A stretch of DNA of 37,535 nt, from positions 1-37,535 of the IMG/VR virus record IMGVR_UViG_3300026885_000046; one strand, given 5' to 3'. The stretch's first letter is position 1. Each line of letters begins with the position of its first letter. Under the pieces are notes generated by a model that made no database searches, was not told the DNA's origin, and worked only from the letters and a program-made list of their open reading frames with translations. Below are positions 30,460 to 31,473 of this stretch, piece by piece. The position numbers and the translations under genes are program-made.

Positions 30460-31473
30460 ATGATAATCTTTGACCCTGAAAGAGGAGAATATGTCGACAC
30501 AGAAACAGGGGAAGTGGTAGAAGACAGAGTTGTAGACCTAGGACCAGAATGGAGAGTATATAATCATGAAGACGTCTTAGAGCGTGAAAGGACTGGATCC
30601 CCACTGACCTTAAAAATCCACGATGAAGGACTTTCGACCACGATAGGAAGATATGGGAAGGTAAAAGATAGGATAAAGCTGATGAAAATGCAGAGGTTGA
30701 ATAACTGGAGTAGGATCTCATCTACTAGGGAGAAAAAATTAGTGACATACCTTTCAAGGCTTAACAGAGAAGCATCAAAACTAGATCTACCAAAACATAT
30801 GAAAGAAACTGCTGCATTTATACTAAGAAGACTAATTGAGAACGGGTTAGAAAGGAGAATAAGTTTAAATGCGCTAATTGCCGCAGTATTATACTATTCG
30901 TGCCAAATGAATAACGTGCCTATATCTTTGCAGGAATTTAAGGTAAAATTCGGTGTTTCTGTAAGTGAGGTCTGGCAGGCCACGAAGAGGATAAAAACAG
31001 TTATCCCAGAATTCAGGCCGACAATAATACCGACCAAATACATCCCTAAAATAGTTGATAAATTGAACCTACCGCCGATTATAGGGACAAAGGCTGCGGA
31101 GTTAATAGACTACATGTATAAGAATGGGCTAATCAGCGGCAAGAATTACTTAACGTTGAGCGCAGCTGCAGTGTATGTGGTGGCTATACTAATGGACAAT
31201 AGGAAATCACAAAAAGAAGTGGCAAAAGCACTCAATATTTCTGAGACAATTATAAGGCACAGATATAAGGAAATAGTAGAGGTTTTAGGGCCTATAAGGT
31301 ACATATGTAAAAGCTGCGGGTATGAGTTATACAAATTTGAAAAAGTAGGGCAGGACTATTATGGAGTCAGAGCTCCCTCAGAAATAAAATCAATGTTCGG
31401 CAGAAAATGCCCACGGTGCGGTCATGAGTTAGGAGAGCCAACCCTGACTGGAAAACTTGAGGTGATTATATAA
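30460..31473 (+). CDS. tfb: Virus-encoded transcription initiation factor IIB homolog with an extra C-terminal Zn ribbon
   Basis: [29 protein letters not shown]-reader/linker, two cyclin repeats, [20 protein letters not shown], then CKSC...CPRC. Confidence 0.92.

Follow-up and report, generated by a model that had tools for sequence, protein, structure and literature searches.

The window analyzed here is the whole 37,535-nucleotide stretch that makes up IMG/VR virus record IMGVR_UViG_3300026885_000046, an entire virus record of 37.5 kb that is 98% complete, is related to the Sulfolobales viruses YNP1 and YNP2, and is syntenic with YNP1. On the plus strand of this archaeal virus from a hot spring lies a gene coding for a transcription factor of the archaeal TFB/TFIIB family, referred to below as vTFB (Table 1). 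The protein is a three-part mosaic, in which amino acids (aa) 1-27 are of the type seen in host TFB1, aa 28-276 are of the type seen in host TFB2, and aa 277-337 correspond to a small zinc-ribbon protein. The first-pass annotation of this DNA had described the gene as virus-encoded, and the identity of the record and its relation to YNP1 and YNP2 bear this out.

An in-frame TAA at 30430-30432, 10 codons 5' of the start, and an upstream gene that terminates at 30455 in a different frame and codes for a Cys-free coiled coil exclude a longer or frameshifted N-terminus of vTFB. The standard genetic code suffices to read the gene, and no alternative code is needed. The two cyclin folds of the TFB/TFIIB family were recovered by Pfam, where the TFIIB repeat PF00382 matched twice (2.6e-27; 95 bits against a cut-off of 23.6), as well as by the AlphaFold2 (AF2) model and by Foldseek. 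The model had a mean predicted local distance difference test score (pLDDT) of 79.8 and helices at 68-276, and its best Foldseek match was the P. woesei TFB core 1d3u_B (TMt 0.83, E 6.7e-11). In addition, the NCBIfam model of archaeal TFB, PRK00423, aligned continuously from aa 2 to 276 with profile positions 24-306 of 312, scoring 222.9 bits, which is under the model's whole-protein cut-off of 384. The Pfam profile Zn_Ribbon_TF matched aa 2-32 from profile position 11 of 43 onward (29.6 bits, cut-off 29), and aa 1-147 contain no Cys at all. The B-reader and B-linker retain the GPEWR motif, R44, G46, and T60 as in 68 cellular TFBs. These results are in line with the earlier description of a complete TFB core behind an N-terminus that starts in mid-ribbon without Cys. 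That description had also placed about 55 extra residues, with a CKSC...CPRC pattern, after the helix-turn-helix (HTH) that binds the TFB recognition element (BRE), and had noted that cellular TFBs usually end shortly after this point. Cellular TFBs indeed stop 8-12 residues past the HTH, and the extension of vTFB was measured at 61 residues, close to the first estimate, with C283/C286 and C317/C320 as its Cys pairs.

Table 1. Features of the vTFB gene, its gene array, and candidate promoters in the window.
Feature	Position	Strand	Basis or remark
Whole vTFB gene, 337 aa + stop	30460..31473	+	Open reading frame (ORF) list, translation, Pfam and NCBIfam TFIIB, AF2, Foldseek
TFB1-type B-ribbon remnant, aa 1-27, first knuckle lost, Cys-free	30460..30540	+	Segment identities, TETGEV motif, AF2
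B-reader and B-linker, TFB2 type, aa 28-85	30541..30714	+	62% to TFB2 vs 37% to TFB1
Two cyclin folds, TFB2 type, aa 86-276	30715..31287	+	Pfam TFIIB repeats, core tree
HTH, aa 246-272, with diversified BRE-recognition helix SETIIRHRY	31195..31275	+	Alignment, entropy
Fused C4 zinc-ribbon domain, aa 277-337	31288..31470	+	Homology to small host protein, alignment A3
Zinc ligands C283/C286 (CKSC)	31306-31317	+	
Zinc ligands C317/C320 (CPRC)	31408-31419	+	
aCcr1-like ribbon-helix-helix (RHH) gene	29723..29920, probable start 29741	+	Pfam RHH_1 2.4e-08
C2H2 zinc-finger ORF	29932-30210	+	Pfam zf-H2C2_5, zf-C2H2
Coiled-coil ORF, 82 aa	30207-30455	+	ZapB- and bZIP-like matches only
BRE/TATA-like motif ATAAGCTTTATATATTA	29028..29044	+	33 nt before the first gene of the array (29077)
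Second promoter class ATAAGCTTTWTATAYTA	23995-24011, 29028-29044	+	Heads of the replication-gene array and of the vTFB-containing array
Promoter-plus-leader TTATTTTTWR-N5-14-YCCYAYTW, then ATG	7707-7732, 8212-8237, 13127-13152	+	
Promoter-plus-leader TTATTTTTWR-N5-14-YCCYAYTW, then ATG	23503-23528	-	

A word-indexed search returned the relatives of vTFB in three tiers. The first tier comprised 28 full-length proteins of 332-354 aa, all of which share the Cys-free start MIIFDxERGEY.DTETGEV and a C-terminal CxxC..CxxC domain. The second comprised cellular Sulfolobales TFBs of about 292 aa that are 51-63% identical over aa 2-276 only, with a canonical four-Cys ribbon and no extension, and the third all other archaeal TFBs, of at most 37% identity. 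Two orthologues, YNP1 gp65 (65% identical over the full length) and a 'TFIIB-type' protein of YNP2 (58%), are annotated as putative TFBs and known only as such database annotations; they share the three-part architecture and the gene neighborhood of vTFB. When five Sulfolobales genomes were queried with vTFB, each gave a TFB2 (38-57% identity), a TFB1 (36-37%), and a separate small ORF that matched aa 275-331 only (48-74%).

A second virus lineage, represented by P0174, has the same three-part mosaic and keeps both Cys of the TFB1-type ribbon. Its contigs are virus-like and carry genes for Cas4, ThyX, PAPS reductase, and RHH proteins, together with an ATV_ORF273-like gene. Judged from its sequence, P0174 looks like an intermediate form of the mosaic. 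Another relative, P0024, was deposited as part of a Thermofilum sp. metagenome-assembled genome (MAG). It sits on a 25-kb contig (L127) with virus-like content, including an AAA ATPase resembling that at 14658-15965 of the window, an N6/N4 methyltransferase, many ORFans, and an RHH-vTFB gene pair, and L127 is probably a mis-binned virus.

Origins of the three parts of vTFB

The central part of vTFB (aa 28-276), which covers the reader, linker, and cyclin folds, is 55-62% identical to TFB2 (Saci_1341 type of S. acidocaldarius), 29-37% to TFB1, and about 20% to rudiviral TFBs. The host proteins of 292 aa were identified as TFB2 because they are flanked by a gar1-like gene and tfeB in two genomes, and the gar1-tfb2-tfeB order is a hallmark of TFB2 (Kuo et al., bioRxiv 10.64898/2026.09.06.749720). 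In the maximum-likelihood tree of aa 28-276, TFB2 and the viral clade were united with a Shimodaira-Hasegawa-like approximate likelihood ratio (SH-aLRT) support of 100, and 25 of the 26 viral sequences formed a sister group to Saccharolobus TFB2 (support 99), inside the TFB2 of Sulfolobaceae; this and the other tree were quick searches, and SH-aLRT was the only support computed. The first-pass annotation had proposed such a phylogeny against the host TFBs and had named, as the outcome that would speak against its view, grouping as an ordinary host TFB with the same extension. Grouping inside a host TFB clade was indeed found, but no host TFB carries the extension.

The host TFB2 differs from vTFB in several respects. 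It has a four-Cys ribbon and an invariant recognition helix, ends 8 residues past the HTH at a length of about 292 aa, and is encoded in the gar1-tfb2-tfeB array, whereas vTFB has a Cys-free TFB1-type ribbon, a diversified helix, and a fused zinc ribbon, and is encoded in a viral array. Since both the gar1 synteny and the four-Cys ribbon are missing, vTFB is TFB2-derived and is not an orthologue of TFB2. The one viral sequence that fell away from the other 25, the metagenomic P0020 on a 31.6-kb contig, paired with the TFB2 of Acidianus sp. HS-5 (P0030). This placement indicates a second exchange with the host gene, and suggests that the viral TFB gene may recombine with host tfb2 on an ongoing basis.

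The N-terminal part has a different affinity. Over aa 1-27, vTFB is 63-67% identical to Sulfolobales TFB1, 77-81% to rudiviral TFBs, and 48% to TFB2. The motif ..IIFDxERGEY.. TETGEV.. and the scarcity of Cys are common to vTFB and Sulfolobales TFB1, and the AF2 model places strands at 2-5, 10-13, and 19-20 with a pLDDT of about 80. The third ribbon Cys (position 13) is present in 97% of the 68 cellular TFBs and is Asp in 26 of 26 viral relatives. The four-ligand N-terminal zinc ribbon of the TFB/TFIIB family is lacking in vTFB, and it is lacking in host TFB1 as well, which has two Cys only (CPPDK..C[T/A]ETGEV). The viral ribbon is thus a further reduced TFB1-type ribbon. The term 'remodelled' in the first-pass annotation is accordingly overstated, since the ribbon of host TFB1 itself holds only two Cys. 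TFB1 remains distinct from vTFB in its core, in keeping its first knuckle CPPDK, its second-knuckle Cys, and a canonical HTH, and in lacking a C-terminal domain.

The two-Cys B-ribbon (CPxDK..C.ETGEV) was seen in Sulfolobales TFB1 of five genomes (L094-L098), in related TFBs of the Desulfurococcales type, and in rudiviral TFBs. The canonical Cys4 zinc site is missing even from TFB1, the main initiation factor of Sulfolobales.

The virus-encoded TFBs of the Italian rudiviruses ARV2, ARV3, MRV1, and SSRV1, likewise Sulfolobales viruses, have a near-identical TFB1-type ribbon. However, they have two Cys, a very divergent HTH, and no C-terminal ribbon, and their core is not of the TFB2 type. Common descent of the whole protein with these factors was not borne out, as only the ribbon is alike and the core lies on a separate long branch.

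Sequence conservation is distributed unevenly along the viral proteins. Twenty-five positions are at least 93% conserved among the 68 cellular TFBs, and at 20 of them the viral clade has an entropy below 1 bit; 19 retain the cellular residue, and position 13 is fixed as Asp. The positions still fixed include D5, G17, V19, D26, E30, W31, R32, R44, and T60, the last five of them in 26 of 26 viral proteins. Only positions 255, 263, 264, 267, and 268 reach 1 bit or more, and all five are in the HTH. Among the aligned cellular proteins (TFB1, TFB2, and further archaeal TFBs), the recognition helix has the sequence TEVT[I/V]RNRY, and it occurs in variants in the viral clade. The fixed ribbon, reader, and linker together with the diversified HTH suggest that the side facing RNA polymerase (RNAP) was kept and the DNA-reading side altered.

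Compared with a 96%-identical relative, the window gave ratios of nonsynonymous to synonymous substitution rates (dN/dS) of 0.03 for the ribbon, 0.05 for the reader and linker, 0.06 for the zinc ribbon, and 0.18 and 0.00 for the cyclin folds. In most of the more distant pairs, the ribbon and the reader/linker had the lowest or near-lowest proportion of nonsynonymous differences (pN) of all segments. Every segment of vTFB is under purifying selection. Taken with the alignments, the putative RNAP-facing parts are preserved, and what would be the DNA-reading head is remodeled by substitution and by the adjacent fused ribbon.

The C-terminal domain has a free-standing counterpart in the host. The domain matches a conserved family of small proteins with an E-value of about 1e-24, so the C-terminal Cys pattern is not a chance one. 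The host proteins (P0093 type, an unnamed family annotated as hypothetical only) have 58-75 aa, typically about 66, and 67 of the 81 genomes that we sampled from the same GTDB order encode one; in two genomes their gene adjoins the CCA-adding-enzyme gene, cca. All four Cys of the ribbon are invariant across 40 aligned homologues, and alignment A3 of host and viral copies gave C, C, C, C, V, G, G, P, and E as invariant residues. The block F-E-K-V-G-Q-D..G-V-R-T-P-S-E between the knuckles is likewise kept in host and viral copies. The viral ribbon was modeled with a pLDDT of 78-90. It shares with the family the CxxC..CxxC ligands and the central block; the host proteins stand alone, have a basic C-terminal tail, and are encoded beside cca, whereas the viral copy is fused and tail-less.

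The fusion junction lies between ..EVLG and PIRY.., and the viral copy begins at residue 2 of the small protein. A MAFFT alignment first pointed to the ribbon as an insertion ahead of a retained TFB tail. Once aligned with the host small protein, the sequence allows an end-to-end fusion just as well, ..LEVII then pairing with ..DIKIxL of the small protein.

Neither for the viral domain nor for the host small protein did Pfam and NCBIfam scans return more than generic zinc-ribbon matches below cut-off, and comparison of the AF2 model of the host protein (pLDDT 76) with the PDB gave no informative relative (Foldseek best E 0.4; best Z 2.8 in a wide VIA-align search). A feature search of the ESM Atlas returned unnamed clusters only. 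An exhaustive profile search over 1.84 billion representatives returned 195 relatives of the domain; nearly all are 56-190 aa long and carry the domain N-terminally. Fusions of TFB size were limited to the window's clade and P0174, all viral, and no cellular TFB with a fused zinc ribbon was found in this search. In a tree of the domain, the window's viral clade was monophyletic (support 90) among Sulfolobaceae-type proteins; with 55-60 aa, the tree is too poorly resolved to judge whether the P0174 fusion is independent.

Family members of other cellular lineages (P0155, P0216, P0236, and others) have C-terminal extensions of 40-120 aa. Two of these extensions resemble winged-helix domains, a likeness that Pfam did not confirm, and one protein has a weak N-terminal RHH match. 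From these architectures, the zinc ribbon may be a module that is joined to DNA-binding proteins.

Predicted complex of the host small protein with TFB2

The fusion in vTFB led us to suspect that the free-standing host protein binds TFB2. A complex was predicted for the small protein and host TFB2 aa 85-293, entered as P0052; over the core alignment, P0052 does not differ from the TFB2 of G004, the genome that encodes the small protein. The ipSAE was 0.62 in three runs, and the best of 3 controls reached 0.00; a value of 0.62 was attained by 51 of 78 solved complexes and by 2 of 108 mismatched pairs. In the three runs, the partner had a pLDDT of at least 80, and the contacts agreed to at least 94%.

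The predicted interface on TFB2 consists of the tail (284-293), the helices at 218-233 and 251-261, and R277, Y280, and R281 of the recognition helix, and the tail is sandwiched between the first strand and the C-terminal strand of the small protein. The prediction supports binding of the host small protein to the C-terminal cyclin fold and tail of TFB2.

Gene neighborhood and candidate promoters

The vTFB gene is part of a tight plus-strand array that extends from 29077 to 31708. An RHH gene about 540 bp upstream of vTFB in this array codes for a protein that shares 89% identity with YNP1 gp61; its identity to a 58-aa host protein, which carries R2, K7, and R27, is 60%. These three residues are critical for the division repressor aCcr1, and aCcr1 homologues in YNP1 and YNP2 were reported previously (PMC9976878). 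Genes of this aCcr1-like RHH type stand beside vTFB in three virus lineages, namely those of the window, P0024 (L127 9840-10004), and P0174 (L121 4237-4395). The C2H2 zinc-finger and coiled-coil genes between the aCcr1 homologue and vTFB may belong to the same regulatory module.

Two classes of candidate promoter were found in the window. The ATAAGCTTTATATATTA motif at the head of the vTFB-containing array occurs at exactly two places in the window, with 0.00 matches expected. Each of the two copies (23995-24011 and 29028-29044) is followed by a near-palindrome containing TATAC, a possible operator. The TTATTTTTWR element with its leader has 4 exact matches against 0.01 expected. Weaker copies lie upstream of 6806, 18766, 21833, and 23883, a G/C-rich ..CCCCCTAAGACCCCCAAT.. 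block is often found 5' of the element, and the element also occurs in the relatives L083, L086, and YNP1. It may represent a distinct, perhaps late, viral promoter class. A scan for sigma-70 promoters and terminators, which does not apply to archaeal promoters, gave nothing informative.

Downstream of vTFB, a Dam-like methyltransferase ORF (31705-32085) shares 89% DNA identity with part of a spindle-shaped virus of Sulfolobus (MK054227), and a 77-bp stretch at about 32146-32222 is 97% identical to MITE-SMN2, a miniature inverted-repeat transposable element of Sulfolobus monocaudavirus SMV1. These matches indicate a recent exchange between unrelated Sulfolobales viruses. In addition, two very large plus-strand ORFs, 1927-6159 (1410 aa) and 8798-12796 (1332 aa), had no Pfam match at E up to 0.01, and probably code for structural or unknown virion proteins.

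Possible function of vTFB

The function of virus-encoded TFBs is unestablished according to a review (PMC9501531). Annotations of such factors are known from YNP1, YNP2, the Italian rudiviruses, and haloviruses. In the literature searched, there was no account of a TFB1/TFB2 mosaic, of the origin of the C-terminal domain, of the predicted interaction with TFB2, or of the linkage of vTFB to aCcr1.

For the host factor, more is known. TFB2 is the division-phase master activator of the cdv genes, of other genes of that phase, and of its own operon; its expression is cyclic and under repression by aCcr1, and the proteasome degrades it via its C-terminal cyclin fold (Kuo et al., bioRxiv 10.64898/2026.09.06.749720). 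We consider it somewhat better than even, with a probability of roughly 0.55, that vTFB actively initiates transcription for the virus with an altered reading of promoters, that it is insulated from host control of TFB2, and that it is deployed with a mimic of aCcr1. The protein is assembled from three host-derived modules, a TFB1 tip, a TFB2 body, and a small zinc-ribbon protein. It would bind TBP-DNA in the manner of TFB2, and its conserved ribbon, reader, and linker would recruit host RNAP. The diversified helix, together with the adjacent zinc ribbon, would read a changed BRE, and initiation would take place at a set of promoters chosen by the virus, outside the host control of TFB2. vTFB would also escape the degradation that acts on TFB2. 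Its gene would be co-expressed with the viral aCcr1 homologue, and such homologues in other viruses shut off host division genes. We infer the recruitment of RNAP, the changed promoter specificity, the escape from degradation, and the target promoters. The first-pass annotation had suggested a specificity factor by which host RNAP is redirected to viral promoters; this is plausible and draws indirect support from the conserved ribbon remnant, B-reader, and B-linker and from the diversified recognition helix, and vTFB and the aCcr1 homologue are best read as a putative module for the takeover of transcription and the cell cycle.

Several points weigh against this interpretation. The viral ribbon is without its first knuckle and any Cys, and docking on RNAP could be weakened. 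The assignment of this ribbon to the TFB1 type comes from only 27-32 residues. The diversification of the HTH could stem from relaxed constraint and not from a new specificity. Neither of the two promoter classes in the window is tied to vTFB, and there are too few promoters per genome for an analysis of co-variation with the HTH. Finally, the ipSAE of the predicted complex is a model score, and a preference of the small protein for TFB2 over TFB1 is not separable, as the two tails are similar.

A more far-reaching proposal, which we regard as tentative, builds on the predicted complex. The small zinc-ribbon protein might be an unrecognized partner of TFB2 or of TFBs that sits on the C-terminal cyclin fold and tail, beside the BRE-reading helix, and perhaps steers promoter choice or the degradation of TFB2 that depends on this fold. 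The virus would then have fused this partner to a TFB2 core with a TFB1-type tip, giving an orthogonal factor resistant to host control that would be deployed with the aCcr1 mimic to reprogram the division-phase transcription of the host.

Alternatively, vTFB might be a natural dominant-negative TFB2, one that holds division-gene promoters together with TBP, recruits RNAP poorly owing to its truncated, zinc-free ribbon, and with the aCcr1 homologue blocks division, giving enlarged cells for virus production. The derivation of the core from TFB2 and the loss of the first knuckle and every Cys from the ribbon fit this idea. An engineered precedent also exists, since TFB2 without its N-terminus acts as a dominant negative in S. 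acidocaldarius and keeps the cells from dividing (bioRxiv 10.64898/2026.09.06.749720). Moreover, the aCcr1 homologue is linked to vTFB in three lineages, and viral aCcr1 homologues arrest division (PMC9976878). However, no part of the protein is more conserved than the ribbon, reader, and linker, and strong purifying selection acts on them, which would be needless in a decoy. A TFB1-type ribbon has been retained or acquired, complete with both Cys in P0174, and host TFB1 functions on two Cys, so the loss of Cys need not mean loss of function. A decoy of TFB2 promoters should also retain the host recognition helix, yet this helix is diversified. Because the RNAP-facing segments are the most constrained and the recognition helix has departed from the host sequence, we disfavor the dominant-negative explanation and consider it unlikely, although less so than the explanations below.

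The presence in one protein of a degenerated zinc ribbon and a gained one could also mean that the C-terminal ribbon substitutes for the lost N-terminal ribbon at the RNAP dock. In solved TFIIB and TFB preinitiation complexes, the region of the C-terminal cyclin fold and HTH is at the BRE, distant from the RNAP dock. The viral domain is homologous to a free-standing host family and not to B-ribbons, and in the prediction the host homologue packs beside the HTH, against the C-terminal cyclin fold and tail. P0174 carries the C-terminal ribbon in addition to a full TFB1-type N-terminal ribbon, and host TFB1 already functions with a Cys-poor ribbon. Such a substitution is very improbable. Least credible of all is that vTFB is an ordinary host TFB paralogue, a mis-binned cellular gene with an extension, or a decaying, functionless copy: the core does fall inside host TFB2 and one relative is labeled as a Thermofilum MAG, but the window is a virus genome syntenic with YNP1, the 'Thermofilum' and P0174 contigs are virus-like in gene content, the domain is on no cellular TFB found, and dN/dS is 0.00-0.18 over all segments.

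T4 gp55 and SPO1 gp28, which are phage sigma factors or appropriators, are virus-supplied promoter-recognition subunits for the RNAP of the host. The resemblance of vTFB to them is a functional analogy only, as these proteins are unrelated, act on bacterial machinery, and have no homology to vTFB. For the question whether archaeal viruses redirect host RNAP by general transcription factors of their own, vTFB gives a concrete, testable design in which a TFB1 tip and a fused candidate cofactor are joined to a TFB2 body and natural variation centers on the BRE-reading helix. It also connects the viral takeover of transcription to the cell-cycle circuit of TFB2 and aCcr1 that has recently been described in Sulfolobus. 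In addition, by the logic of gene fusion, a small zinc protein that is conserved and unannotated becomes a candidate partner of TFB2. If true, such a partner would be relevant to the regulation of TFIIB-like factors and of cyclin folds.

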